DNA from: Octopus bimaculoides | Taxonomy: Eukaryota | Reading direction: 5' to 3' | Assembly (NCBI RefSeq): GCF_001194135.2 | Contig: NC_068988.1 | Span: 43,696,891 to 43,760,890, forward strand | DNA length: 64,000 bases | In this document: piece by piece, positions 740 through 63,113 of the stretch | How positions within the stretch are numbered: position 1 is the first letter of the stretch | Layout of the letters: every line of letters begins with the position of its first letter | The notes under the pieces: model-generated | What the model saw: the letters and a program-made list of their open reading frames with translations, nothing else | Told to the model about the DNA's origin: nothing | The model's database searches: none | Translations under genes and position numbers: made by a program

Positions 740-1217
740 TTAATATATATTAGTAATTATGTATGTCTGCATGCCTGTCTGTATGTATATATATGTATGC
801 CATTGTTCAGTTTTATTTCAAGATTACTTGCCCATAGAAAAAAAGCCGGTTTCTAACATAAACCCAAAGCTCTTTCATTGGAATTTCATCATCAACAACA
901 GGGTATTTTTTGTATGTATGTATGTATGTATGTATGTATGTATGTATGTATATATGTATGTATGTATGTATGTATGCAGATTTGTATGTTTTTTTTTGTG
1001 TATGTATGTTCCAGTGATGGATTGATCTGTAGTCTTCGAATTAGCTTTCTCCATTCTGGTTTTGAGAAGCCTAATGTATGTATGTATGTATGTATGTATG
1101 TATGCATGCATGTATGTATGTATGTATGTATGTATGCATGCATGTATGTATGTATGTATGTATGTATGTATGTATGTATGTATGCATGTCTGTATGTCTG
1201 TATGTATGTACGTACGT

Positions 1218-1281
<64 letters not shown>
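740..1281. repeat. Compound microsatellite (TATG)n then (GATA)n, hosting a retrotransposon 3' end
   Basis: Direct reading of long TATG and GATA tracts. Similar CA, TA, CATA, GATA and GA tracts recur throughout the window and explain most ORF-track entries. Confidence 0.95.
800..1075 (-). mobile_element. R4/Dong-like non-LTR retrotransposon, (CATA)n family, short 3' end (copy E)
   Basis: Reverse complement aligns to 12410-12708 and 47840-48214 (LGFSKPE..KLIRRLQI C-terminus plus 3' UTR). It has an internal (CATA)n tract and (CATA)n at both junctions. Confidence 0.85.
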
Positions 1282-3304: not shown

Positions 3305-3770
3305 CGAAAGGATGCCTTTGAGTACTCATGAATTAAATAATATCGATTGCATTTCATCAAGCATGTGATGGTCCAACTTTAAAGTTAATCACCATGAAGG
3401 TTGGTATATAGAGGTTCTTATAAATTCGGTTTTGTTCAAGATTGGAGTGGCAGGCAGATGTCGTGGAGCTTCTTTGAAATTGAATAACTTTCTATGTAAT
3501 GTTGGTACTTTTGATTTCCAAATGTGCTGAGGTAGTGATGTAAGTGTTTTCCAAATGGCGGACGCAAAATTAGTTGTTGTGTTGGTACAGACAAATTATG
3601 AATGTGTTCTTTGACAACACTATGTAGTAAATGGAATCATCATTGTCGTTAAAGGATACTTTGGTGCGCTACACGATGCTGTTTTCTGGGCATTTGATTT
3701 TCAAAGACTTGACTCTTGTGCCATACCATAGCAAACACATTTAGATTTTTGCCATTGTTGACGAGGCCAC
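3305..3770 (-). mobile_element. Penelope-like element, decayed GIY-YIG endonuclease region
   Basis: Manual translation KCPENSIV*RTKVSF...YYIVLSKNTF...TTSAHLEIK...FMSTQRHP follows the Penelope GIY-YIG pattern (CP..C...VY.A.V...YIG.T...F...T.LS.H.W..K...EL.S.CRH), with stops. Confidence 0.6.
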
Positions 3771-4559
3771 AGAACGCCTGCCTTACGGCAATCTATGACG
3801 CTCATTACATAGCAAAAATTAACCTTTACGTTTTACTTGCTGAAAAGCTGTGAGATTATGTGACGCCTTGGAAAATGTTTTGCTGATTAGAGGGATAAAT
3901 CTTTTTCTGTAGTATTTGTTTTTCGTAGCTAGTATTGCATGGTGGATTGTACTATAAAAGAAATTTATTTATTGTACGACAGGGGTAGTAATTGTTTTAT
4001 AATACATTGCTGTAGAACAAGCAGCAAGAAAGAGAACTCTCAAATAAACAGTTTATGTTTAATTATTCATATGTTAAACTTCACATCAGTATCAACTGGA
4101 TTACAAGCCAACTAATAGCAAAATCAATTTTTTTATGTTGTTTTATTTTGTAATCGTTTCTAATAATATAAAAAAAAATTATTTAGTTTCGAATTTTCTT
4201 GTTAATAAGCACAACTAATCTACTTAATAGAATTTAATACGTTCTATGGTATACATTCTGTTTAATAAACAATACTGCATATATTCTTAACGGCGATGCA
4301 TGGAAACAAAATAGAGGGTGCAAGTCAGATTTGTTTGAGCAAATTTATAACCAATAACATTCTATTTGTCAAAAATCCGCCTTACTTTCAGTATGAGACT
4401 AGATTCTCTAATGCATTTTCCATTTTTGTCAACTCGCTCGAAATTTGATCGGCTAGTAACATAGAGAATGCTAAAATAGTCATCTGCATTTGATAAAGCG
4501 AAGTTCTTTAATAGCTTAACCGGGTGACATGTCGAACGATGTGCCAAATATGTGTAACA

Positions 4560-6420
4560 GAAATATCTCCTGGTAAAATATGAAAGCCTTCCTGCAAGCC
4601 TCTACGTGGTTTCTCGATCTTTTGAAATAAGTCAAATCTTTCTTGAATCGCACCCTGTCCTGTTTAATGTGAGCTGGCGTAGGGCTGACCAAAAGCATTC
4701 TCAAAATATTAAGATTTTGCCCTTAATTAATGATTTAAAGGAATACCAATATCAGAAAATGAGTATAGTGATGTATCAGATGAAAACTTTTAACTTTTTA
4801 AAGTGCCAATTAGTTTGGGTAGGGATGTAGGCGGTGGTAATGATGTGGGTAGTGGTGATGGTACGGGTGGTAGAAGTTGTGGTGATGCCGTAAACTGCAA
4901 CAAAAGCAATCTATGCCTCTTTTTCAATGCCAGGCATGGTCCCCAAAAATAGCTCGCCCTGCGATAGTCACCTAATATGTGGCCCATTAAGCACTCCAAC
5001 CTTATTTTTATCACAAGACAAAACTGGAAAGTTTCTGATAATGTATTCGAAGCAGTTACTGTCTCAGTGTTTCAACACATGTTTTGCACAGTAAATGGGA
5101 TGCCCAAGCTTTGTCTTGTCACCCAGTTTCATACTAAAGTAAGTAAGGTAAGCTTTCTTCACAAAATCTGTGATTTTACTTCACTGCCTAATCTAGAAAT
5201 AAGCAGAAGACATCGGGACTGTTTTTACATTCTCTTCTCTCACAACCGACCATATTTCTGAGATACAAATCATGTTGAAGCCAGTTGACAGCTGGGAAAG
5301 CATTTTCAGAATAGTCAACAGTTATAAAGTAAGCAAATGCAGATTTGCGATGGCAAAGTTCCATAAAGAGCATACATACCATGAAGTTCTTTTTGCAGTT
5401 CTTTGACCATGCTTAACGAAAAGTAACCTTGACCCATGTGACCTCACAATCTAAACATTAAGAGCACATTCAAAATATCAATTTTCATAAAAGACAGTTA
5501 AAAGTTCAACAAAACATATCTCATCTAGTTTGCAATGTTAGTCACACTAAATTAAGCAAAGCGTGGGCATATTTGCAGATAAATTCCGCAAATATGAGAC
5601 TATGTTGTCAAGGGCCTCCAAAATATGTTGTTTCTTAACATCTAATAGTATAAAGGACATTTCTGTTATCATCATGACATTTGAAAGCGGTTAGGTTGAA
5701 AGACTGAAGGTTGCTGAAGTTTGATACTTTTTATTTACTAAAGATACTTAAATCATAACTTTTGTTTTCATTTTTGTAGTTGTATTTACTTTAAATGACA
5801 TTGAAAATCTATGTTTTCAAAGTTATGCTCAGCTCCATACATGGGTTCGCATTTGAGGAAGTCAAATCTATCCTTAGTAATGGTGACAATACCAGAAATG
5901 TTGAAAAATGGACATCTCAGTTTGTGAAAAATCTTGACGTGATAGAGCAAAATGGGTTTCATTTTTGAAATCAGCACCCCTGAATTAGTAGGAAGCATGT
6001 TTCCAACATCAGGCAACAAAAACCCTGTTCCTCAGTGTTATCAAATGGCAGTGACATTCCTATCCATTTTTCTCATATCATAATATTACGTCAGAATGGA
6101 TTTTAATATGATACCAAAAAGTTTACCAGAATTATTTTTGACCATGTGAGCACCACATTAAAATATAACCATTCTTCCAAAAATTGAGATTGCGGAGCTC
6201 AAAGTATCATAGATATCATTAACGGTATTCGGGGCACATTGTAAAATCTTTCCATCTGTAAAATTTCCTTTCTGTTAAAACAAGAAACCATTTCTGTTAA
6301 ATGAGCTAAAACCTCATATCTTTAACTAAGCCAGAAAGAGTTCATTCCCTATATAGTACTCGGAGCTTTTCAGTAAAAATAGTACTTGATATTATACACT
6401 TTTTTTAGTTGGGATACAGG
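4560..6420. mobile_element. Possible decayed DNA transposon (unclassified)
   Basis: About 2 kb free of microsatellites, with a transposase-like stretch FEISQIFLESHPVLF...KILPLINDLKE and subterminal-type words (ttttgaaatcagcacccctgaatt, aatcataactttg). No TIR pair found. Confidence 0.25.
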
Positions 6421-6444
6421 AAAGAAAGTAAGACTGTTCCTTAA

Positions 6445-6688
6445 TTCTTTCTCTCTTTTATTCTTTCACTTGTTTCAGTCATGTGACTGCGACCATACAG
6501 GAGCACCGTCCTGAGGGATTTTAGTCGAATAAATTGACTCCAGGACTTATGTTTTAAGCATAATACTTATTCGATCAGTCTCTTTTGCTGAAGCGCTAAG
6601 TTACGGGGACTTAAGCACACCAGCATCGGTTGTCAAGCAGTAATGAGGTGGGGGGAAAATACAGACACAAAGATACACACACTCATAA

Positions 6689-6766
<78 letters not shown>

Positions 6767-6925
6767 GACGGGCTTCTTTCAGTTTCTATCCACCAAATCC
6801 ACTTGCGAGGCTTTGGTCGGCCCGAGGCTATAGCGTAAGGTATTTGTCCGAGGTGCCACGCAGTGGAACTGAACCCGGAATCATGTGGTTTGGAAGCAAG
6901 CTTCTTACCAGAAAGCCACGCCTTT
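6445..6925 (-). mobile_element. tRNA-derived SINE, family A, near full length, with internal (CA)n(TA)n microsatellite
   Basis: Minus-strand head ggcgtggct..tggtaagaagcttgcttccaaaccacatgattccgggttcagttcc carries pol III A/B-box-like motifs. Body shared with 31370-31712, 37741-38110 and 51805-51970. Confidence 0.85.
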
Positions 6926-8502
6926 GCTTACATTTTCTGAGAAAAAAAACAAAAACAAAAAAAACTTTGTTTTTTAACTTTTTTTATATTTACTTTCGTA
7001 CTTTTCACACCCATAGATAACCGGTCTTGTGTCTAGCTCCAAGAAGCCATTATTTGCATGGACAAAATAGGCCATACACATGAAATATGATGTAGCACCA
7101 AGGAAAGAAAACACGTTTCTTTCTCATGCTGTGATAGCACATAGAAAATATATTTACAAACAATCTTTTCAAAATAGTACATCTTACGCTTCAGTTAACA
7201 CATGCGCACAATATTTTCCGTTAAGTGAAATGAACTAATGAAATGAACTTACGCTTTACACACTTACACTCGAGAAAACTAAATACACAGTGGTTCATTC
7301 ATTATAATGTTTTTAAGGAAGTATACGAAGCAATGTATATATGTGTATTTTTGTATATGAGAGAATATACATACAGACATACATACACACATATGCATAT
7401 ATATATGTATATATGTATGTATGTATGTATGTGTATATATATATATATATTATATATATATATTTGAAAATTAGCGCTTTCAAATGCATAGAAAAACAAC
7501 GTACATTCACTAAATAAAGGAAGGGATGCATATGCAGATTCTAATATTTACAATAATTAATTGACCGTGATTTCGACGTATTAAGGTCACTGTGCACAAA
7601 TTATAGATATGTATATATATATCGTGAAGTATATTTGCCGCCTAAATGTGGCTGACCCATATGGGACGATGCTACTGTAGTTTATTGCCCCAGGGAGACA
7701 TCTCCAGCTGGCTAACGACACACTGTCTGCTCCTGATCAGTATTTGCGAAGGGATGTATGCATGTATGTATGTATACCCCCCCCCCACGCATATATATAT
7801 ATATATANNNNNNNNNNNNNNNNNNNNNNNNNNNNNNNNNNNNNNNNNNNNNNNNNNNNNNNNNNNNNNNNNNNNNNNNNNNNNNNNNNNNNNNNNNNNN
7901 NNNNNNNNNNNNNNNNNNNNNNNNNNNNNNNNNNNNNNNNNNNNNNNNNNNNNNNNNNNNNNNNNNNNNNNNNNNNNNNNNNNNNNNNNNNNNNNNNNNN
8001 NNNNNNNNNNNNNNNNNNNNNNNNNNNNNNNNNNNNNNNNNNNNNNNNNNNNNNNNNNNNNNNNNNNNNNNNNNNNNNNNNNNNNNNNNNNNNNNNNNNN
8101 NNNNNNNNNNNNNNNNNNNNNNNNNNNNNNNNNNNNNNNNNNNNNNNNNNNNNNNNNNNNNNNNNNNNNNNNNNNNNNNNNNNNNNNNNNNNNNNNNNNN
8201 NNNNNNNNNNNNNNNNNNNNNNNNNNNNNNNNNNNNNNNNNNNNNNNNNNNNNNNNNNNNNNNNNNNNNNNNNNNNNNNNNNNNNNNNNNNNNNNNNNNN
8301 NNNNNNNNNNNNNNNNNNNNNNNNNNNNNNNNNNNNNNNNNNNNNNNNNNNNNNNNNNNNNNNNNNNNNNNNNNNNNNNNNNNNNNNNNNNNNNNNNNNN
8401 NNNNNNNNNNNNNNNNNNNNNNNNNNNNNNNNNNNNNNNNNNNNNNNNNNNNNNNNNNNNNNNNNNNNNNNNNNNNNNNNNNNNNNNNNNNNNNNNNNNN
8501 NN

Positions 8503-9140: not shown

Positions 9141-11348
9141 ACACACACACATACACGTTTATTCATGCATACATGTATACACATAGAGACCGTTAAACAA
9201 ACAACCAACAGACAGACAGAGACACACGTACGCACATAAAATTTTGTATTGTATTGTAAGTATTGTTTTGAGATTCTTCGTTTGCTTGAGATTTTATAGC
9301 GAATGATATAATCATATATAGTTATAATTATATACATATAATGTGTGTCTGTGTTATTTCTGTTCTATTGTATTAAGTCTCTTCGTCTGCTTAGACTTTT
9401 ATGGCATTCGGAATAATTATATATACTTATAATTACATACATACTTATTTATATACATGCGTGTGTGTGAGTAGGTATATATGTATGTATGTTTGTGAAT
9501 GTGTGTGTTTGTGTTTTTGTTTTAATTTGGGTATTTGTAAGTTCGTACTTTTACGAGTCCATGTGTTTGTGTGTTTTATGACAGGTCGTGAACAGAATGA
9601 ACACAAAAGAATAAAAGGATTTTCTATTACCGTCGTGCAATATCAAAAGGGTCACGAACAAAAAAAAAAAGAGAAAAGAAAGAAATTAGGAAAACAATTG
9701 TATCTCAGTGACCCTCTTTTGTGAGAAATTGTCAATTTTACACGGAGCTTTACATAATTTACTGCCGTTCTTTTATATATGTCGGGTTCTTAGGCACGTG
9801 TTTCAACATCCACGTGATAAATTAGTCACTTGGAGATTCTGATGAAAATGTTCCTCTAATATTCCTTGTGTTGATACGTATTCAATAACAGTAGCATTAA
9901 TTTCTTTATGTATCCCAAGGGCAGTCTTTTCTACATTGATTTAGCCTGTAACACATATGTATGTGAGTCCAGCTTGTATGTATTTGTACCAGGAGAGTAA
10001 GACCAAGCAATTTGGCGGTGAGCTTAAAAGAAACAGAGATATATCTTCTCTCAATCACTAGTTTATTTCCTTTAGCGACACCAGTGATCTGTAAGATTCT
10101 TTATCTCTGCAAAGCTTCATTTCTCTCTCTATCTCCCATCACCATTCTGTCTTACCTTTGTCTGCCAATTTCGTCTATCAACCTTTTTTTTTTTTATCCT
10201 TTCTTCTTCACAGCATTGAAAGCTGATTTTGTTGTATCCATTTCTCAACACTTTTCTCAACTGGAGGCATTTCTGAAGAAGCTTTTTGTTAACTTGAAAA
10301 TCAGAAATGGTCGATTTCTCATAGATGCGCCAGAACCAATAATAAACGTATTGTTAATAAATTCCCGTTACACACACACAGACACACACACATACCATAC
10401 ACACAAACATACATACACACACACAAATATACATATATACATTCATGCATGAATGCACGCATACATACATACATTCATACGTATATGCATGCATGAATAC
10501 ATACACACATGTGTATGTATGTATGTATGTATGTATGTATGTATGTATGTATCAAACACATTTTATTAAATAGTGTAATACCTGCGTACTTATTTTTTGC
10601 ATTTATTATTATACTTTTTATAAATCCCAAAATACATCAATTAATGTAAAAAAGAGAAAACACGTTCCAAACAATGACTGTTTTTATTTTTTCCTCTTTC
10701 CTATAAAGTAAGAAAACACAAAGTACGTCAATAGACCAACCGACATATGACTCAATATCTCTTCATGTTTCCTTTCTCCGGGTATGACAAAACTCGTGTA
10801 TGTGAAAATAATTGCAACTGGAAATCAAAACTGGTTTTCGTTGACTAAGTTTTCAACACACCTTTTACGAGATCAAATACTCCCTTCTTCGATGGAAAAT
10901 TATTAAAAATTTCCAGCATACGAAAAAAAAAGAAGATTTTTCGTAAAGTCGTACCACAGCAAAAGTCAAATGCGCGAGACGGTTTCTAAACCACTTTTCT
11001 CCACTTATACTGATAATAATCTTAATAAATGCATAAGCACCTAAAAATATCGTCTTACACATTATAAATACAAACCTGGTATCTAAATTAGAATTAACAT
11101 ATGTGTACGTCATAAGATTGTCCAGAGACTACCAGAAGATGAGAATTCACAATCATCTGACCAGCTACCTAAACACTTAAACGAAATGGTCAGCCGTAGT
11201 TCTCTTCTCATCAGCACATATAGAAACCTATGTACATACATAATCATACACACACGCACGCACACACACACACACACACACACACAAATACACATGCGTA
11301 CACACACACATGCACACGCATGCATACATACATACATACATACATACA

Positions 11349-12708
11349 TACAATGTATTTGCAGTGCCAGTACTCTTACCAACATTTGGGCTACTTGATT
11401 GGACGCTTGATGAGGTCCGAGCTTTTTATATGAAATCGCAGAAGATACTAACCAGCACACATAATTTCTACACCAGCAGTGACGTAGATTGTCTCTACCT
11501 AAAACGAAAACAAGGGGGCATAGATTCAACATCGATCCAGACTCCCTTTGAATGTCGTATCATATCCGTTCGGCAACATCTTTTTACCACCAAGTGTCGA
11601 AGTGCATCCTTGACCAAGTTTGCATACATAAGACTTGGAAAGCAGCTCCTTGAGTAGCATTCCTTGTCTGATAACCTTAAATACATGCCCAAAGAAGTCG
11701 CACTACTTTACTGCAATGTATCATCACATGAAAGGATGAGCGTATATTAGCAGAAAACTATGCCTGGATATGTTAGTGGAAACATCCGGGATGGTAGTAA
11801 CATTGATCTTCAAAGTAGTCTCTCTTGGACCAACAACCGGATTATTAACTCCCTCTTTGAAGGTATGCGTTTGCAATCCAGGAACAGGAAATACCAACCA
11901 AATATCTGATGCACAAAAGGGACAGAGACGCAGGAAAAGTGGCAAAATGTGATAACCAATACAGACTTTGTGGAGTTAACACCGAAAGTATTACCTACAT
12001 CATAAGCAGTTGTCTGAATATATTCTCACGATATTGTCTACCGATGAGACATGATGATGTAGCTAGGACACTGTTTAATGAGATACATCGGAAGGATAAC
12101 GCCCATGACCAAAGAAATAAGAACCCACAGTGTGGTAGAAACTATAGCTACTCATAATAAAAAGGAGTACTGGTGGAATGTCCCAGAGAAAACCTCAGTA
12201 AAATGTAAACGTAAAGACCTGATACTATAATCTAAGACAGAAAAGAGAAAATGTGTAAGGTTGTGGAAATCAGCTGCCAACCGGATTTCAAGCATAAAGC
12301 TGAAGATCAGTGAAAAAAGAATATCTACGCTGAAGTAGAGAAATTTGCAATCACTCTATCCAGATTACAAGTGTTACATATTCCAGTGCTCCATTAATTA
12401 CAGGTATAAATTAGGTTTCCCCAAACCAGAAAGGATAAAACTGATTCGAAGCCTACAGATCCAAGCTGGAAGTGTAAAAATCTGTAGAGCATGTCTAGAC
12501 ATGCAACCATATGCATGAGAATGTATACATAAAACAAAACATACACATCTGCACATATACACACATACATATATACATACATACATACATACATACATAC
12601 AAAAATACCAAGCTGATGTTGAAATTCCAGTGAAGGAGCCTTGGATTTAGGTGAGAAATCGGCTCTTTCTCTGTTAGCAAGAATTCTTGAAATAAAATTG
12701 AAAAATTA
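11349..12708 (+). mobile_element. R4/Dong-like RLE non-LTR retrotransposon, 5'-truncated, (CATA)n family (copy A)
   Basis: Decayed ORF with the RT thumb (NVFAVPVLLPTFGLLDWTLDE...DVDCLYLKRKQGG), CCHC/RHD (RLCGVNTESITYIISSC...MRHDDVAR), the endonuclease region and the 3' UTR. Starts directly after (CATA)n and ends in (CATA)n. Confidence 0.9.
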
Positions 12709-12782
12709 CATACATACATATATACATACATACATACGTACATACATGCATGCATACATGCATGCATGCATAATACATACAT

Positions 12783-13650
12783 ATTTCCCCTGTATCTAAC
12801 GAGGAATGCTACAGGTACCGAGGGGTGGATGAAAATATATCTTACAATGACACCTGTAACAAAACACGTGTCACTAAAGAATATTACGGCCGAATAAAGA
12901 TAATTTGGACCTCAGAACTCTCTGCATTCAACAAAACAGTGGCTCACAATGTGTTTGTAGTGCCAATACTTATAGCAACATTTGGGCTGCTTGATTGGAC
13001 GCTTGATGAGATCCGAACCATTGATGCGAAAACCCGAAAAATACTAACAAGCACACATAATTTCCACATAAACAGTGACGTAGACCACCTCTACCTAAAT
13101 CGAAAACAAGGCGGTAGAGGCTTAACATCGATCCAAAATGCCTTTGAATGTAACATCATATCCCTTCGGCAACATCTTTTAACCACGAAGTGTCGAAGTG
13201 CATCCCTTGACCAAGTTTGTATACATGAAGGTGATAACATCATAAGATTTGGAAGGCAGCTCCGAGCAACACTCTTTGTCTGATAACCTAGAATACATGC
13301 CCAAAGAAGTCGCACGACTCTACCGCAACATATTATCAGATGAAAAGATGAGCCTACATGAGCAGAAGACTATGCATGGATATGTTAGTAGAAAGCTCCG
13401 TGATGATAGAAACATCGATCCTCAAAGTAGTTTATTATGGACCAATAGCCGGATTATTACCTCCCACTTTGAAGGGTATGCGTTTGCAATCCAAGAACAG
13501 GAAATATCAACCAAGTACCTGATGCACAAAAAGGATGCAGAAAAAGCCGTAAAATGTGACATCCAATACAGACATTAAGGAGTTCACACTGAAGATATCA
13601 CCCACATCATAAGCAGTTGTCCGAAAATGTCATCACAGTATTATCTACCT
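12783..13650 (+). mobile_element. R4/Dong-like RLE retrotransposon, (CATA)n family (copy B), 3' part cut at a SINE
   Basis: ISPVSNEECYRYRGVDENISY...KEYYGRIKIIWTSELSAFNK...DVDHLYLNRKQGGRGL...HFEGYAFAIQEQEISTKYL...THIISSC. Begins immediately in the (CATA)n tail of copy A. Confidence 0.9.
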
Positions 13651-13846
13651 ATTCAGCGTGACAGAATGTAACAAGGCTGGCTCTTAAAATTAATTACAAG
13701 TACAACTCATATTTTGCTGGATGTGTGGACTGAAGTAACATGATATAAAGTGTCTTGCTCAAGGACACAACACGCCGCCTGGGATCGAACTCACGACGTT
13801 ACAACCATGAGCCTAATACCTTAACCACTTAGCCAGGCGCTTTCAC
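13651..13846 (-). mobile_element. tRNA-derived SINE (family B/C head), 3'-truncated
   Basis: Minus-strand head ggctaagtggttaagg...gagttcgatccc (A and B boxes). Body shared with 62803-63113. Confidence 0.75.
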
Positions 13847-13902
13847 GGAAGAAAACACGCGCGTACGCACTCACACACGCACATACACACATACATATAT
13901 AC

Positions 13903-17044: not shown

Positions 17045-17096
<52 letters not shown>

Positions 17097-17505
17097 GTGA
17101 CATACACACACATACATACACACACATACATATACACACATACATACACACACATACATACACACACATACATACACACACACACATATAAAATTATTTC
17201 AACGCTTTTAAATCATGCTGCGCTGTGCAATATGCTGTTTAATAAGAAACCAACAAAAGAACAAATATGCACATACAGATAACAGTGATAGTCTAATTTA
17301 TGATTGCTTTGTATAATAGATAAACATTGTATACTGAAGAAAGACACCACGGACAACTCTGTTAAAGAGTGGTGAACAAGCTGTGAAACAGTCCGTCAGA
17401 AGGCTTTCCCTTTTCCTTGAATGTAGTATCGTATTCCTTTTCGCTTATTAACTATGATGACAGCATATATACATACATACACAAATGTGTGTGCGCGCGC
17501 GCGCG

Positions 17506-28880: not shown

Positions 28881-29530
28881 TCACACACATGCATATAGAC
28901 ACACATAAACACACATACACACACACACACACGCATGCACGTACGTACGCACAAAACCAGCAGACAGTAGCAAAGCCAGCAGCCGGGCAGAGCACTGTAA
29001 TAAAACAAAACGATGGACGGTCGACGACAGCAATACACAATGATCAGCTAACATCAAGAAACACACGACAGTGACCACTACCATACCTAATCCAAGAACA
29101 ATATGCTTCGAGCTATCTCTGTGTTTATCGTTCGGAGTAACAATATTTTTACCTTTTTTCCGTTTACGATAAAAAACAACTATCAAAATTCTCAAGCAGA
29201 TTTCCGTCTTCTTTAACGTAACGTAAACCTCATATATTTCACCTTATATTCACCAACACAAACTTGGTACACCGCATCAAAATAAATCCCTTTCTCTCAC
29301 ACCATAAAATCATTGAATTCTGAACAGACCGAAAATGATTTACTGACCAGATACCACAATTCGCACAAACTGTGACTGAGAGGCTCTTGAAACTCTTGAA
29401 AAGGAGATTAATAAATAATTTTGAAGAACTCAATCTGGAGAACAAAGTTGAATTTTGTTTACAACATAGAGATAGTGAAAACTATAAAGTTTCGTGTTGC
29501 TATAATAATAATAATAATAATAATAATAAT

Positions 29531-29832
29531 TTATATGAGAAGTATCGAAAAAATAGCAAAGTACCAGGACCTAGCTATTGAATTACCTTGACTATGGAAA
29601 GTGCAGATAAAATGTATCCCAGTAGTTATAGGTGCATTGGGAACTATCCCCAAAGATCTGAACAGATGGACAGAGGAAATAGGCATAAAACTCAGTTTAG
29701 TACAGCTCCAGAAAACAATGTTATTAGGGACAGCTAGGATACTTAGGAGGGTTCTTGACATCTAAGGTTACTTGTTGTAGCCCGATGCTAGGATTTTTTT
29801 CCAATAGTCTAATCTGTTGAGTATATGTGAAA
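29531..29832 (+). mobile_element. R4/Dong-like retrotransposon 3' end, (TAA)n family
   Basis: EKIAKYQDLAIELP*LWKVQIKCIPVVIGALGTIPKDL...LQKTMLLGTARILRRVLDI* (stop at 29763-29765). (TAA)n at the 5' junction and a TAA/TGA tail. Confidence 0.9.
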
Positions 29833-29852
29833 ATGATAATAATGATAATAAT

Positions 29853-31369: not shown

Positions 31370-31712
31370 TAATCTTTTCTTTTTTTTTTTTTGTTTCAAC
31401 CATTGGATTTCAGCCATGGTGGGGCACCATCTTGAAGTGTTTTAGTCGGACAAATCGGCTCCTATACTTATGTTTAAAATCTGGTGCTTAATTTGTTCTC
31501 TTATTACAAACCGCTAAGTTACGATGATGCAATCAAAGTAACATCGGTTGTGAAGTGCTGGTGGTGGACAAACAGAAACATACATACATACATACATACA
31601 TACATATGTGACGGGTTAGTTTCATTTTGTCTACCAAATCTACTCACAAGGCTTTAGTTGGCCCGGAGCTATTGTAGAAGACACTTGACCAAAGTTTTAC
31701 GCTGTGGGACTC
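31370..31712 (-). mobile_element. Family A SINE with internal (CATA)n
   Basis: Colinear with 6445-6925 (ccgctaagttacg...gacggg...aaggcttt..ggccc). Confidence 0.75.
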
Positions 31713-31715
31713 AAT

Positions 31716-32335
31716 ATCGAATGCTAACAGCTGTAACTGTTCTATGTCCCGAAGACTGCTAAAATCTTTTGTCACTCCAGATTTACACACAACATCAACG
31801 TATGCAATATTTTCGTCCGTTCCGACATACTTGTAACATTCACGGTCGGTGACAGGGGAGATAGGTCGTCCATTGATATCTGTATTCCCCATCTGCTTAA
31901 TAATCACTCCTGAACTGACGGCCAAATACGAACACTAATCCTGACCAAATTCTATTCCTCTGTCTCGTGACAATATTCTATCCAGGTCTAACAGTCCCTT
32001 AATGTCGTGAACGTTAACTGAAAACAGCATGAGATCACTAGTATCAACTGTTTGGAAGACATTTATAATAATATCTTCTGCAGATCCTAACGTGACTGAC
32101 GAAGAGTTTTCTTTTAGAATGAATGGAATTTCAGGCAATTTATCGCCCTGGAATATTCCTGTTGATAACCTAATTTTGCTTATGACCATAGGAGGTTTTT
32201 CCGTTGATAGTGATAGCTGTGTGGAGTATATTGCGATTAGTTTCAGTAGCATACTCTATAAAGGAAGGAACCTTGGCCGTCGTAATGACTTTAGTATGTA
32301 TAAGTGGAAAATAGTCACATGTACATATGTTCGTT
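31716..32335 (-). mobile_element. R4/Dong-like retrotransposon RT core fragment, (CATA)n family (copy D)
   Basis: KIRLSTGIFQGDKLP (RT motif 4), ILSRDRGIEFGQD, and ISPVTDRECYKYVGTDENIAY, which overlaps the start of copy B. The 5' side abuts an imperfect (CATA)n tract at 32335-32395. Confidence 0.8.
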
Positions 32336-32399
32336 TTTATGTATGTATATATATATATGTATGTGCGTATGTATGTACATATATATATGTATACATGGG

Positions 32400-32672: not shown

Positions 32673-33359
32673 ATATATATATATATGTGTGTGTATGAAA
32701 GTATTTATGTATGTATGTATGTATGTATGTATGAACGTATGTATGCATGTATGCATGTATGTGTGTACGTACGTATGAGTTTGTATAAACGTATGTGTGT
32801 ATACATGTATGAAGTATGTATGTGTGTATGTACGTACGTACGTATGTATGTGTGTATGCATGTATGGATGTATGTATGTATGTATGCGTGTATGCATGTA
32901 TGCTGAACACAAGGTCCGCACTGATATGTGTGCCTATGATCAAAGATGTTCCAGACCTGATCATTCAGTCAGTTCATTTAACAATGGCCTTATTTCGCTA
33001 TCATTTGGTTTTCATTTCTAGCAAGCCGAGAAACAGCATGCAGACTTCTTCTTGAGTACGTTGTCAGTATATCATCACATGTAATATGTATTGATGTTGC
33101 ATAATCACAGAATGCGAAGATTATGCTCTTGATATTGTAGCATTCGCAGAGAAGAAATAAAAACGGTTGAAATGAATTACTTCAAATTCAATTAAGCGCA
33201 GGAACTGAAATGGGCGAACATTTATTAAAGTTTGAAGTTTGAATAAATGGAAGGCTTATAATATCATGAAGTGTGAGAAGTAGACAGACGAATAAGTATT
33301 ATTAGGCACACAAAGAAATAGCTAGCTACATAGATAGACAGAAAGACAGACAGACAGAC

Positions 33360-33432
<73 letters not shown>

Positions 33433-33746
33433 GATAGATAGATAGGATTAAGGAGATAAACGTCTAGGTAAGTTGCTTAGTTAATACATACATAAATACA
33501 TAATACACACATACATACACATATATTTTGCGTTTACAGTGAGATATATGACTACTACTGTATGAGGTAGAGATCTACATAGATTATCATTATCTAGTCA
33601 GTTTTCGGTATAGAGATTAGTCCAACACTGTATTTAGCAGTATTGTCAGTTATGATATACCGAAAATATGTAGCAAAAAATGACGATAAACACGAGTGAG
33701 TATAAATTACTAATAATTTACACGTATACTTGCCGTAATTTACCAC

Positions 33747-35766: not shown

Positions 35767-35967
35767 CAATCTTTCTATCTTTTCGCCTTCTTTCTTGACC
35801 ATTCGTGGGACAAAATGGCATGCCACATCAACTATATAGCATATGTGATGCACCCTGTCCACCATCACTAGGTCCGGTCTGTTATGCGCTAGCACGTGAT
35901 CTGTTTGGATTGGGAAATCCCAGAGGATTTTGCTAGTCTCCGACTCCGCCACTCTCTGCGGTTTGCG
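35767..35967 (-). mobile_element. R4/Dong-like RLE endonuclease fragment (TAA/TAG-associated)
   Basis: KILWDFPIQTDHVLAHNRPDLVMVDR...IVDVAC...KKEGEKIER contains the PD-D catalytic motif. It follows (TAG)n on its sense strand and runs into tagtaataatga. Confidence 0.85.
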
Positions 35968-36294
35968 CTACTACTACTACTACTACAATTAAGGTAACTA
36001 GCTGGCTGAACTATTGTTGATATAATAAGCACCAATTGAGCATCGGGGTCGATGTAATCGATTGGTTCCCTCCAACAATTTCAGACCTGGTGTTTATGGC
36101 AGAAGGGATTATTATTTTCATAATCATTATAAGCACCATTGTATCTCTTAAGACTGGGATTTTGGATTTACAGGGTCATATACCTGATAATAACACCTTT
36201 TGATTCCTTTTCAACCCCTTTTTTTTTACTGTAGTTAACTCTCGTTAAATAATATTTTTTGTCATTTATTGCAGAATTCGAAAAAAAAAGAAAA

Positions 36295-37740: not shown

Positions 37741-38110
37741 AATTCTTCTTTTACTTGTTTCGGTCATTTTGACTGCAGCCATGCTGGAGCACCGCCTTTA
37801 GTCGAGCAAATCGACCTGAGGACTTATTCTTCGAAAGCCTAGTACTTATTCTAACGGTCTGTTTTGCCGAAACGCTAGCATACGGGGACGTAAACACACA
37901 AACATCGGTTATCAAGCGATGGTGGGGGACAAACACAGATAATATATATATATATATACGACGGGCTTCTTTCAGTTTCCACTCAGAAGGCTTTGGTCGG
38001 CCCGAGGCTATAGTAGAAGACATTTGCCCAAGGTGCCACATAGTGGGACTGAACCCAGCACTATGAGGTTGGGAAGCAAGTTTCTTACCACACAGCCACA
38101 CCTGCGCCTA
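37741..38110 (-). mobile_element. Family A SINE, near full length, with internal (TA)n
   Basis: Head taggcgcaggtgtggctgtgtggtaagaa...gggttcagtccc and tail ggcggtgctccagcatggctgcagtc. Confidence 0.9.
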
Positions 38111-45990: not shown

Positions 45991-47726
45991 TTATTATTAT
46001 TATTGTTGTAGTAGTTGTTATAAAGATCTTAGTAAGCATTGATTGACCAAGACATATGTAAGAAAGTATTTAAGCAGTGACTGTTGGGTCTTTTTTGTAA
46101 GCCATACTGTAATTCAGAATTACGTTGTCCAATATGTGTCGTTCCCTTTTTAAGACAGTAGGATGAGATTTGAATTAGATTTGTCTGCTATTTATAGCAC
46201 ATCAAGTGGCTATATACAGGCTCGCTGGATGTCTCAGTGGAGAGGAGATCACCGTAGATGTTTTGTTGTGTTTACAAGAAAGATAACTAAAACATCTGTG
46301 GTGGTCTCTGTATGGAAAAATGGGAGGGAAGTTGTTGAGGAAATACCCGAAGGTAAATTCAGATGAAGGAGTTTCCATATAGACACTTGACTTCTTCAGT
46401 AAATAAATGTTTATGTCAACAAACTCCCTGTAGCTCTTCGAATGAGAACCACATGATTTTGTTTTGTTTTATTTTTATAGTCTATTAGTCAGAGACGGAA
46501 GATAAGTACCCATGACCCTTTTCAGACTCTTTGAGGCTGACGGAAGAAAGTGGGGAAACTATTTTTAAAGCGGAAACCTAGCCCAAATACTTGCAAAAGA
46601 TAGGCCTTTCTAAAAGAGATCTAAGGACTGGCGGTGTCACTAAACCATTAATTGGATTAATTGAACCACCTAACAACAAAAGCAATCTTATCGATAGGCT
46701 TTCACTTATCATATTTTACTTTCACAATGATTTAATCCGTTCGAGACTAGAGTAGAAGAAACTTTTCTAAAGTGGCAGATACTGGGATCGATTTCAAAAC
46801 TACATAGTTGTCTCCATTTCCAATAAAGATACATAGTGTACGGCTAAACTATATGACTAATTTGTTTCTTTACTAGCTACCTTGAGCCGATTGTTGTGCA
46901 ACAATTTGTACTGGGATTCGTAAACTATGAAACTGAAGCAACTGATATCCAATCTCAGTATCAACAAATCAATTAATGTCAGCAGAAATAACGTTGAATG
47001 GAAGGAAACCGAAGTTCTGGTTTTAGTAAACTCCACAAAAGCCAATGGAGCATACCTCAACTTACGTCGTTTCGAGTTACGTCTTCTTCGATGTTACGTT
47101 GTTTTTTTAAAGAAATTAATGGAAAAAAATAAACCTCAATTTATTCGATTTTATGCCGGTCTCAGCAGCGTAAAGATATTTTTTTAAAAATGATATTTAA
47201 AAGCATAAAAATTTTAAACATTTCAATACTGAAGTGGAAAATCAAATACAAGACGTGAAAATATGTACGAACCATTTATTAAAACAGATACAAACTAATA
47301 ATTTTTTTATCAGGTTAACCCATAAGTTCTATCCGAATTTTGAATAAAGAAAACAAGTGATCAAATGTTATATTTAATTGAAATTTAATCATCAATGTAC
47401 TTTCCCTGATTATCTATGACTTCCTTCCATCTATTTACAAGCTTTTTAATCCTGTCTGTCGTTCTCGTGAGTTACTGCAGCAACGATGTTCATCTCGCTC
47501 CGATATTTATTGCGTTTCCTATATAAGTCTATGAAGAAGTTTTATCGCAGACATCTCCAAAGCTTCAGGCCTTCAAACAGTGTGTGTGCATTTAGTATGA
47601 TATACGCATGGATCTTTACCTGTCTGTCTGTCTATCTATCTATCAATCAACTTGTGTATGTGTGTGTGTGTGTGTGTATAATATATGTATGTTCATATGT
47701 ATACATACATGCATACACACATACAT

Positions 47727-48214
47727 GAACTATTGAGGAATCTATAGCTACTCTATCCAGATTACAAGTTCAGGTTTATACCTGTAACTATCGGGGTACT
47801 GGGATATGTAACACACTGCCTAAATACCAATCTTGAGAAATTAAGCTTCTCAAAACCAGAAAAGCCAAAGCTGATTTGAAGACTATAGATCCAAGCCATT
47901 AGTGGAACTGTAAAAATCTGTGAAACTTTCCAGAAGTTTATCATTTCAATAGACATGAGCGTCTACATATGCAACTATATGCATAAGAATACATGCATAA
48001 AACAAAACATACAGATCTGGACATATACATACACACATGCATGCATACATACATCCATACATACATACATACATACATACATACATACATACATACATAC
48101 ATACATACCCTGCTGATGTTGATGAAATTTCTGTGAAGGAGCTTTGGATCTAAGTTAAGAATTGACCCTTTCTCTATTAGCAAAAAATCTTGAAATATAA
48201 CCGAATAATGACAA
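47727..48214 (+). mobile_element. R4/Dong-like retrotransposon 3' end, (CATA)n family (copy C)
   Basis: ELLRNL*LLYPDYKFRFIPVTIGVLGYV...FSKPEKPKLI*RL*IQAISGTVKICETF plus a 3' UTR with internal (CATA)n. CATA-type repeat at both junctions. Confidence 0.9.
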
Positions 48215-48235
48215 ACATACATACATACATACATA

Positions 48236-48340
48236 CACTTTGTACATACATGCATACATACACTTTGTACATACATGNNNNNNNNNNCTTTGTACATACA
48301 TGCATACATACACTTTGTACATACATGCATACATACATGC
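48236..48340. repeat. 25-bp minisatellite derived from the (CATA)n tail
   Basis: cactttgtacatacatgcatacata at 48236 and 48261, continuing beyond the 10-N gap. Confidence 0.8.
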
Positions 48341-49299
48341 ACTTTGAACATACACACACATGCGAAAACATGCTGTCACTCTTTTCCGAAAGATTGGATT
48401 CTTTCATTTATAAAACTGACTTCCTTTTTGTATGTAAGAACTATTTTTTATTAGTTCATCCGTTAAATTAAAAATATTATCCTCAACGACCTTCATTTTG
48501 TCTTTTCGGTTTTTTCTCTTCCTTTTTAACTACCCTTTTATCACTGTTTTTCATTTTTATATTCTTGATTTATATATTTATTAGATAATCAAACATGTAT
48601 GTCGAGTGTTTGCTGTTTTTTATTACATGAATGTAACCACTTAAAAATATTATTCTTTTTAAGAGATGTCAAACTAACATAATCTTGAATCATCTGTACT
48701 ATAACATATGAAATGGAAGAAAATGTGGACTGAATTTTCATAAATTGCTATTTGTTTTAAAGAGAGGATTTTTTCTTCTTCAGTTTCATTAGAGGTGTCA
48801 TTTAATTATTATTTCCTTGTTAGGCATTTTTCTTAAATATACATTTCATATATTTTTATACATTTATTTCGCGTCAACTGGTTTAAACTGTATGCCCTTT
48901 TAATTAGAAATTGATTTATCAAAACCTAAAGAAGTTTGGATATACTAAGTTAGGATGTCAGGAAGTCTCTCTTTAGTAGAACCGCCATACCAAATGTAAT
49001 CTGTCAAAGTTGATGACATCAACATCTTCAAGAATACCGAGAATTTCTTGTAACAAATAATTAAAAATAAATAAATAAAACTGATGGGGGATTTACATAA
49101 GACGAAAATACTTCTTTTTCGCAGTTTTTTTTATTTTAATAATGGAATTGTAGCTTAGCAATATCTTCTTAATTTAAATCATAGTCTTATAGCTGACACA
49201 TCAATTACTGGGTTAGTAAGTGTACAAACCGAACGATCAGTGGTTCACATCAAATTCCATGCTCTTAATAGATACACTTAACTTTTTTTCCTTCTGCTA

Positions 49300-51804: not shown

Positions 51805-51970
51805 TAGGCGTGGCTGTGTGGTAAGAAGTTTGCTTCACAACCACATGATTCCGGATTCAGTCCTACTGCGTAATACCGAGAGCAAGTGTCTCCTACTATA
51901 GTCTCAGGCCGGCCAAAGCCTTGAGGGTGAATTTAGTCGATGGAAACTTAGAGAAACCCATCATATATAT
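51805..51970 (+). mobile_element. Family A SINE 5' half, ending in its internal (TA)n
   Basis: ggcgtggctgtgtggtaagaagtttgcttc...gccaaagccttgag...gaaacccatcatatatat. Confidence 0.85.
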
Positions 51971-59509: not shown

Positions 59510-59866
59510 AGTAAGACTGGTGATGATTCGACTGTCTGGTGCAGTGGGTATGACCATGGGATTGCACCTAGAAAGTTTCTCTCGGATGCTCCAGTCCGGG
59601 CAAAGTTGTTTATAGAAGACCAGTAGTCGCCCATGCATACTAGCGTCCCCTCTCCACGCCACAAATGTTATCCAAGGAAAAGGCAAAGGCCAATACAGCT
59701 TGGCATCAGTGACGTCGCAGCTCATATCCCCAGATGAATGAACTGGAAGAACGTGAAATAAAGTATATTGCTTAAGAACACAACACACGGCCCGATCCGG
59801 GAATCGAACTCACTGCCTCATGATTGTGAGCCCAACGCTCTAACCACTGAGCCAGGCACCTTCACA
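59510..59866 (-). mobile_element. tRNA-derived SINE, family C (family B-like head, different body)
   Basis: Minus-strand head tggctcagtggttagagcg...gagttcgattccc; body gacgtcactgatgccaagctg...gcaatcccatggtca. Confidence 0.75.
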
Positions 59867-62802: not shown

Positions 62803-63113
62803 GGCACTCCGTCCATTACGACGACGAGCGTTCCAGTTGATCCGATCAACGGAACGGCCTGCTCGTGAAATTGACGTGCTACTGACTGAGCACCCCAGAG
62901 ACACTCGGACATTTAACGTAGTTCTCAGGAGATTTAGCGTAACACAGAATGCGACATGACAGGTCATTTGAAATTCAGGTACTACTCATTTTTGGCAGCT
63001 GAGTGGATTGGAGCAACGTGAAATAAAGCATCTTTCTTAAGGACACAGCGTGCCGCCGGGAATCGAACTCACGATCGCGAGCCGAATACCCCGACAATTG
63101 AGCCACGCATCTT
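62803..63113 (-). mobile_element. tRNA-derived SINE with the family B 3' tail
   Basis: ggcactccgtc..ttacgacga..cgttccagttgatccgatcaacgg tail and gagttcgattccc B box. Confidence 0.85.

Follow-up and report, generated by a model that had tools for sequence, protein, structure and literature searches.

A 64,000-nucleotide (nt) stretch of the Octopus bimaculoides genome (contig NC_068988.1, positions 43,696,891 to 43,760,890; hereafter the window) harbors copies of a long interspersed nuclear element (LINE) family of octopods that is here called R4/Dong-like. The copies are old and mostly 5'-truncated, and the family very likely integrates by target-primed reverse transcription into (ACAT)n microsatellites in one orientation. 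The observations that carry this proposal are the protein architecture, the pattern at the junctions, its statistical excess over background, its polarity, and the rule, common to relatives with ACAT, ACTT/ACTC, AATAT or TAA repeats, that the repeat forming the tail of an element is also the repeat that flanks it.

The fragments of interest are designated A-E (Table 1). According to the preliminary description of this DNA, each 5' junction abuts a CATA-type repeat on the sense strand of the element whichever way the copy lies, and both the flank scores and the polarity agree with this. In sense orientation, the 24-nt 5' flanks match (ACAT)n at 24 of 24 positions in A and in C, 21 in D and 19 in E, and copy B has for its 5' flank the (ACAT/GCAT)n tail of A, 76 nt long. 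Against the opposite polarity, (ATGT)n, the flanks score only 10-14 of 24. Plus-strand copies lie in tracts that read ACAT on the plus strand, and minus-strand copies in tracts that read ATGT on that strand. The intact 3' ends of A, C and D, likewise described as ending in the repeat, run into (ACAT)n with 23, 18 and 23 matches in 24 nt, respectively.

The comparison with random sites that had been proposed was run within the window. At random oriented positions, a score of at least 20 of 24 occurs with a probability of 1.06% and one of at least 18 of 24 with a probability of 2.9%, and the junctions stand far above this 1-3% background. The joint chance for three or four independent 5' junctions is roughly 1e-6 to 1e-8; the 5' junction of B and the 3' tail of A are dependent and are not separate events in the statistics. 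The 53 merged ACAT tracts of the window (∼1 per 1.1 kb) cover 1.9% in one orientation and 2.2% in the other, so that the background carries no orientation bias. At the junction of copy A (...CATACATACA|ATGTATTTGCAG), the trinucleotide ACA is common to the repeat and to the element sequence of copy B. Where a homologous copy permits the comparison, repeat and element overlap by 2-3 nt (ACA in A, AT in C), the trace that 5' joining by microhomology would leave.

The same arrangement recurs in other genomes. Twelve loci (L001-L012) were fetched around homologous proteins, and the full-length relatives in L003, L005, L006, L007, L011 and L012 are bracketed in sense by their own tail repeat, which upholds the earlier claim of a strand-specific tetranucleotide target. 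The two elements of L003 (e1 and e2) belong to different families with 46% identity. The bracketing of an element by (AATAT)n in the butterfly Euphydryas editha points to further target diversity in lepidopteran Dong-like elements.

The repeats upstream of the copies appear to be target DNA and not the tails of other copies. When the 120-nt stretches preceding each of the 53 ACAT tracts were clustered, only known copies of the family were linked, and the other ∼45 tracts are free-standing; the idea that the tracts are tails of this or another repeat family was rejected on that basis. No element 3' end precedes the tract that lies before A, C (144 nt) or D; these tracts are read as target DNA, and the position of B in the tail of A is the exception that a system capable of landing in tails predicts. 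In L006, a particularly telling case, the repeat spans 332 nt upstream and amounts to two units downstream, so its upstream repeat must be a pre-existing target and cannot be the element's own tail.

The fragments were located in the window by self-blastn and by tblastn with intact relatives, which recovered all five at the positions first reported for them. The window is microsatellite-rich (240 TRF rows) and contains 5057 N in assembly gaps. On a 1152-residue relative, the 5' truncation points lie at ∼745 (A), 690 (B), and 1115, 1080 and ∼530-590 (the other three), which confirms that the fragments start at five different points of the element. The best protein matches of the region are uncharacterised proteins of O. 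bimaculoides (64% identity) and O. sinensis, which mark the window as octopod DNA. Identity is 80.6% between A and B (over ∼715 nt), 80.7% between C and D, and about 68-70% between A and D; A-D are thus old copies that represent two subfamilies of one family. The O. bimaculoides copy in L001 matches B at 87% identity. The 5' end of fragment E is placed only to within ∼20 nt. At the nucleotide level, E bears no resemblance to the O. sinensis copy over the same reverse transcriptase (RT) region, and its amino-acid identity to that copy is ∼34%, as against 57% for B; this low similarity places E in a sister family separate from A-D. The assignment of all five fragments to one family therefore stands for A, B, C and D and fails for E.

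Copies A, C and D and the O. sinensis copy in L002 have a common 3' layout, in which the stop codon is followed by ∼60 nt, an internal (CATA)n, a unique segment of ∼105 nt and the terminal (ACAT)n. The unique segment ends in ...CTTGAAATA(A/T)AA..GAA.AAT.. before the terminal repeat. The internal (CATA)n occupies the same position in each 3' untranslated region (UTR), ∼105 nt ahead of the terminal tail (12555-12601, 907-979 and 48023-48110 in the window; 11320-11365 in L002). Because it is present in every 3' UTR, including that of O. sinensis, it is part of the master element, and it could be the fossil of an older tail after which a 3' module was acquired. An AT-rich box (…CTTGAAATA…/GAAATAT.TTAT..GAA) stands directly before the repeat tail in families from different hosts that are only 35-40% identical in protein, and a GG(G/T)GGCCGG motif lies ∼60-100 nt upstream in L003, L005, L006 and L010. 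The box and the motif may be recognition signals for the RT.

Table 1. Copies of the ACAT family, neighboring repeats and other restriction-like endonuclease (RLE) fragments in the window, followed by related elements in other loci
Feature	Position	Strand	Description
Copy C 3' tail	758-799	-	short
Copy C	800..1075	-	last ∼30 codons and 3' UTR; internal (CATA)n at 907-979; 3' end (800) intact
Copy C 5' flank	1076..1219	-	144-nt (ACAT)n in sense orientation; runs on into (CTAT)n at 1218-1281
Copy A 5' flank	11318..11348	+	(ACAT)n; AC-rich microsatellite from 11233 ahead; retained upstream half of target
Copy A	11349..12708	+	5'-truncated at ∼residue 745 of the 1152-residue relative; 3' end intact
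Copy A decayed open reading frame	up to ∼12500	+	thumb, linker, CCHC, RLE
Copy A 3' UTR	12555-12601; 12602-12708	+	internal (CATA)n; unique 3' tail
(ACAT/GCAT)n tract	12709..12782	+	3' tail of A and 5' flank of B; TRF 12707-12783, period 4, 19.5 copies
Copy B	12783..13665	+	5'-truncated at ∼residue 690; 3' end lost within the CCHC/RLE region, against a SINE-like repeat at 13666-13860
Third-lineage RLE C-terminal fragment	29531..29831	+	protein match 29547-29762; (ATA)9.7 at 29502-29530, AATGATAATAAT repeats at 29832-29852
Fragment E	31716..32335	-	reverse-transcriptase core (GIFQGD ... FGQDKC); related but distinct family; 3' end cut by a SINE-like repeat at 31610-31716
Fragment E sense 5' flank	32336-32392	-	ACAT/AT-rich
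Fourth-lineage RLE-domain fragment	35773..35964	-	∼190 nt; sense 5' end abuts (GTA)6 at 35965-35985; 3' side GTAGTAATAATGAC
Copy D 5' flank	47700-47727	+	ACAT-type
Copy D	47728..48214	+	last ∼72 codons and 3' UTR; internal (CATA)n at 48023-48110
Copy D 3' tail	48215-48341	+	(ACAT)n with interspersed CTTTGT; spans a 10-N gap
AT-rich box, window	12680-12708; 800-830; 48185-48214
AT-rich box, other loci	L005 8248-8268; L004 8340-8366; L006 6560-6590; L010 11585-11605
L003			two different full-length elements with three ACTC/ACTT tracts between and around them, the sole such tracts in 22 kb
L004			(ACAT)31 tail only
L005			(CTTA)17, full-length element, (CTTA)75
L006			(TTAC)83, full-length element, only ACTTACTTA
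L007			(TACA)5, element, (CATA)12, then second 5'-truncated copy
L009 (butterfly, Euphydryas editha)	3577-7830		(AATAT)63, element, (TAATA)49, then second truncated copy
L010 (Argonauta)			decayed ACAT/AC tail
L011			six copies in one orientation, with (ACTT)n before each
L012			(TACA)22, full-length element, (ACAT)23

The family belongs to the RLE-type retrotransposons without long terminal repeats (non-LTR), as had been proposed; the order of RT, CCHC knuckle and RLE and the lack of an apurinic/apyrimidinic (AP) endonuclease bear this out. Translations show the RT motifs GIFQGD and FGxDKC, a thumb and linker, a CX2CX8HX4C knuckle, and an endonuclease signature of the form RHD ... (K/R)PD ... 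E-x-S-C-P-x-D. The copies in the window keep remnants of the CX2CX8HX4C, RHD, (K/R)PD and E-x-S-C motifs, which are intact in the relatives; frame 2 of copy A, for example, encodes the CCHC knuckle as KCDNQYRLCGVNTESITYIISSC and the RLE remnants RHDDV ... RPDTII ... VVEISC. Intact relatives consist of a single open reading frame of 1120-1220 residues in full-length elements of 4.1-4.5 kb. Pfam detects RVT_1 and a weak zf-RVT, and no Exo_endo_phos (AP-endonuclease) domain, in the intact 1152-residue relative, and gives nothing significant for conceptual translations of the window copies because these are too decayed.

In a search of the PDB, R2 proteins are the sole matches (best 88 bits). The nearest named proteins outside the cephalopods are a butterfly element and the 'reverse transcriptase' P0069 of the nematode Ostertagia (181 bits, 24% identity, E 1e-47), so the element is nearer to this nematode protein than to R2. 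The P0069 gene is followed immediately by the 3' portion of a 28S ribosomal RNA gene identified by Rfam, as expected for R4; canonical 28S motifs were not found on the Ostertagia contig, which is rearranged, and the location of P0069 at the R4 site is unconfirmed. The N-terminus, lost by truncation from all window copies, holds in the relatives a conserved block of ∼65 residues (W..EL..D.Y.CY...GYM.R.K.LWD..HPE....LR.QA) with a predicted fold of three bundled helices (pLDDT 81), and shows no Cys/His finger. R4/Dong elements are described as having no N-terminal zinc fingers and a divergent Myb/SANT-like domain (PMC7998251), which the predicted three-helix block fits. Assignment of the block to Myb was nevertheless left unsupported by profile search of the PDB and by Foldseek against the PDB, neither of which returned a significant hit.

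A neighbour-joining tree of the C-terminal ∼440 residues, built with no support values and no Dong, HERO, NeSL or CRE references in it, pairs L004 (ACAT) with L006 (ACTT), its sister at 61.5% identity, and ACAT tails occur on at least three branches. Dong-R4 is the abundant class of RLE elements in published octopus repeat annotations (PMC13282606, PMC9115989, PMC8967140), with five recently active families and 1129 recent insertions averaging ∼4.2 kb in O. vulgaris, where HERO accounts for 13 insertions (PMC13282606). The label R4/Dong-like is therefore adopted on the grounds of the architecture, the R4-like nematode hit and published labels of the RepeatMasker type. A self-cleaving ribozyme resembling that of hepatitis delta virus (HDV) has been demonstrated at the 5' end of R4 and Dong (PMC3774820). 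Rfam found no HDV-like ribozyme at the gathering threshold in seven loci with full-length relatives and none at E<=10 in two 5' UTRs, although such ribozymes are poorly detected by sequence models. The full-length 5' ends in L003 and L011 begin CGTGTAATGG....

For the choice of the nicked strand and the reading of the target, we infer the following. The transcript would terminate with a short conserved 3' box and, after it, (ACAU)n. The endonuclease would nick the (ATGT)n strand of a genomic (ACAT)n.(ATGT)n tract, and the freed 3' end would pair with the (ACAU)n tail of the RNA and prime the synthesis of complementary DNA (cDNA). This synthesis would often abort, leaving 5' truncations at many points, and the cDNA end would then connect with the upstream half of that microsatellite through 2-3 nt of microhomology. 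The outcome would be sense (ACAT)n on both sides, with head-to-tail pairs wherever a later copy enters an earlier tail (A, then B). Polarity, double bracketing, varied truncation and head-to-tail pairs would all follow from this account of target-primed reverse transcription, a mechanism established for R2, in which 3' RNA homology is dispensable but improves initiation (PMC10499050).

Candidates for reading the target are pairing of the RNA tail, the N-terminal three-helix domain and the endonuclease, of which tail pairing combined with a relaxed protein preference is most likely. The preliminary description had ascribed the specificity of the R4 clade to a sequence-specific endonuclease; this is oversimplified, given that in R2, the sole structurally studied relative, both the N-terminal zinc-finger/Myb domains and the RLE read the DNA (PMC10499050). 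Helix three of the N-terminal domain, as predicted, is near-identical in an ACAT element (KNLREQATRVEKRKVVMATEY) and an ACTC/ACTT element (KNLRDQASRVEKSKVVMETEY), and the sister families at 61.5% identity have tails one base of the repeat unit apart. Together these leave room for a substantial role of the RNA tail. It is conceivable, if somewhat doubtful on such sequence comparisons, that the target is set largely by the tail, and that its mutation (ACAU to ACUU/ACUC; UAA to AAUAU) redirects integration to the matching microsatellite. Targeting would then be partly RNA-guided and easily re-programmed.

Several observations weigh against integration into (ACAT)n by an R4/Dong-like element as a strict rule. 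In the same-family O. bimaculoides copy of L001, the 5' junction lies in ACA-rich zinc-finger-like sequence with no microsatellite, which may be an off-target site. The 5' end of the near-full-length O. sinensis copy (L002) is without clear ACAT and has only (AT)n, and L004, for all its long tail, has no ACAT on the 5' side; the 5' sides of these three loci indicate that 5' specificity is not absolute. The same-family sample is small (four copies in the window and two elsewhere). The clade label was given with no Dong, HERO or NeSL sequences compared, and the preference for R4/Dong over HERO is provisional. Comparison of four sequences of the ∼105-nt 3' tail yielded no conserved RNA structure, only a weak 7-bp stem without compensatory changes.

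The untidy 5' ends of L001, L002 and L004, the latter two having tails without a clear 5' tract, are what would be expected if the element had no target preference, the (ACAT)n tail being merely carried or synthesised by the RT, as in many LINEs, and the 5' association arising from the very high density of ACAT tracts in octopus DNA (∼1 per 1.1 kb). Yet a flank of this kind is found at only 1-3% of oriented positions and at 4/4 independent 5' junctions in the window, all flanks are in sense though both polarities are equally common, and long upstream tracts of the same unit precede the full-length elements of L005, L006, L012 and L003. This explanation is accordingly held to be very improbable. 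Somewhat less remote, though still improbable, is that the upstream repeats are the tails of other copies, either because insertion is restricted to the tails of kindred elements or because template jumping by the RT makes head-to-tail arrays in one event. Same-orientation tandem arrays are indeed common (A-B, L003 e1-e2, L007, L009 and the six copies of L011), and the R2 RT jumps templates at a low level in vitro (PMC10499050). However, in A, C, D, L005, L006 and L012 the tract on the upstream side has no element 3' UTR ahead of it, and since e1 and e2 of L003 are of different families, their array needs independent events or heterologous jumps.

The arrangement might also have arisen after insertion, through deletion or unequal exchange between genomic ACAT and the ACAT-like stretches of the element, or through repeat expansion at its ends. 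The internal (CATA)n of the 3' UTR would offer a partner for such exchange, the copies are old (20-30% divergence), and microsatellites do mutate to compound arrays, as illustrated by the ACTG core inside ACTT in L011. This origin is scarcely credible, as all five fragments are truncated within coding sequence that is free of ACAT runs in intact relatives, and young intact relatives (L005, L012) are already bracketed. A different kind of alternative keeps the biology and changes the name, assigning the family to the HERO clade or to an unnamed RLE clade in place of R4/Dong. Microsatellites are the reported target of some HERO families (PMC4640811), O. vulgaris has HERO elements of ∼4.2 kb (PMC13282606), and no HERO sequence entered the comparison. 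Set against these points are the far larger number of recent Dong-R4 insertions in octopus (1129 versus 13; PMC13282606), the position of the nearest named relative next to nematode 28S ribosomal DNA (rDNA), and an N-terminus that has no zinc fingers and a three-helix domain, as described for R4/Dong (PMC7998251). Reassignment to another clade is unlikely, but less so than the three explanations before it.

Integration of an R4/Dong-like element into (ACAT)n has close parallels among known systems. R4/Dong elements insert into rDNA or microsatellites, and Dong, including the snail element, targets (TAA)n (PMC3812793, PMC7998251). Like Dong of Bombyx mori, DongAg of Anopheles and DongBg of the snail Biomphalaria, the octopus family is a single-ORF (open reading frame) LINE of RLE type, fixed in orientation in a microsatellite and ending in the same repeat (PMC3812793, PMC7998251); it differs in that its target is the tetranucleotide (ACAT)n and theirs the trinucleotide (TAA)n, a comparison made by description and not by sequence. 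The feature of Dong sensu stricto, (TAA)n as both target and tail, is seen at the fragment at 29547-29762 and is missing from the ACAT family. With R4 of Ascaris and other nematodes the family shares the RT-CCHC-RLE order, and the 28S-adjacent Ostertagia P0069 is its nearest named homologue, whereas R4 targets a unique rDNA site and the octopus family a simple repeat. R2 of Bombyx and birds is the best structural homologue, alike in its RT-linker-CCHC-RLE order and in target-primed reverse transcription with optional 3' RNA homology (PMC10499050), but R2 has one or more N-terminal C2H2 zinc fingers, a Myb domain and a 28S rDNA target, whereas the octopus clade has no N-terminal zinc finger and carries a repeat tail.

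The most similar target is found in a more distant group. Waldo elements of the R1 clade (WaldoAg1/2, WaldoFs1) home to the near-identical tetranucleotide (ACAY)n (PMC3812793). Their endonuclease is of AP type and N-terminal to the RT, whereas that of the octopus family is a C-terminal RLE and its intact relative has no AP domain, so the shared target is convergent. Homing to simple repeats is also common to Togen ((TG)n, near NeSL/HERO), the AP-endonuclease-type fish elements Kibi ((TC)n) and Koshi ((TTC)n), and a microsatellite-targeting HERO of leech (PMC4640811, PMC3812793), which differ from the octopus family in repeat unit and clade. Mino homes to (AC)n (PMC3812793, PMC4640811).

No published ACAT, ACTT or other tetranucleotide target for R4/Dong was found in the searchable literature, with Repbase and Dfam outside the search, and the octopus repeat papers contain no discussion of insertion targets. 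The novelty suspected at first thus holds for R4/Dong within that literature and is weakened by the (ACAY)n target of Waldo and by the wide occurrence of the trait among relatives. Curated octopus repeat libraries very probably already contain the ACAT family. The finding is a real but modest, incremental extension, in which the same machinery and strategy are applied to a different repeat unit.

A tetranucleotide joins the microsatellite targets listed for RLE-bearing LINEs, and the data suggest that R4/Dong-like elements switched repeatedly among repeats of 3, 4 and 5 nt. Such elements form a natural series for asking whether protein domains or pairing of the RNA tail read the target, a question that bears on the retargeting of R2-type enzymes for gene insertion. 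Part of the octopus Dong-R4 load is confined to (ACAT)n tracts, and this safe haven may help explain the copy number that is tolerated. In practice, ACAT-type microsatellite markers in octopus will often have flanking sequence in common.

Other RLE lineages are present in the window. The context of the third-lineage fragment is that of the classical Dong type, in (TAA)n, which suggests that the genome houses such a Dong alongside the ACAT family. The fourth-lineage fragment may have a TAG/TAA-type target. The repeats that truncate B and E are probably insertions of short interspersed nuclear elements (SINEs), in which ARAGORN detected no tRNA-like heads. SINE-like repeats of the kind abutting the 3' ends of B and E recur at 59733-59865 and 62972-63074, and at 37978-38053 and 51855-51940, respectively.

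Further details were noted in the other loci. In L001 (9600-9920), the element's 5' end is joined to C2H2 zinc-finger-like repeats whose HKRIHT linker codons (CATAAACGTATTCATACA) resemble the ACAT repeat. The array of L011 (1500-14646) comprises one full-length and five 5'-truncated copies, two of them cut at residue 289 and two at 1013; the recurrence of truncation points suggests that array units arose by segmental duplication as well as by serial insertion. One of its (ACTT)n separator tracts has an (ACTG)29 core. In L007, a MITE (miniature inverted-repeat transposable element)-like insertion of ∼500 nt (3588-4083), with terminal inverted repeats of ∼35 nt (TGCATCAGTCAATTCCAAGCACCAACATCCCCCCC...), disrupts the ACAT-flanked element in its 5' region. 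(ACAT)n is often contiguous with (ATAG)n/(GATA)n in compound microsatellites, both in the window (1218-1281, 17045-17188 and 33318-33525) and in the unrelated host of L012 (4191-4426 and 8770-8805).

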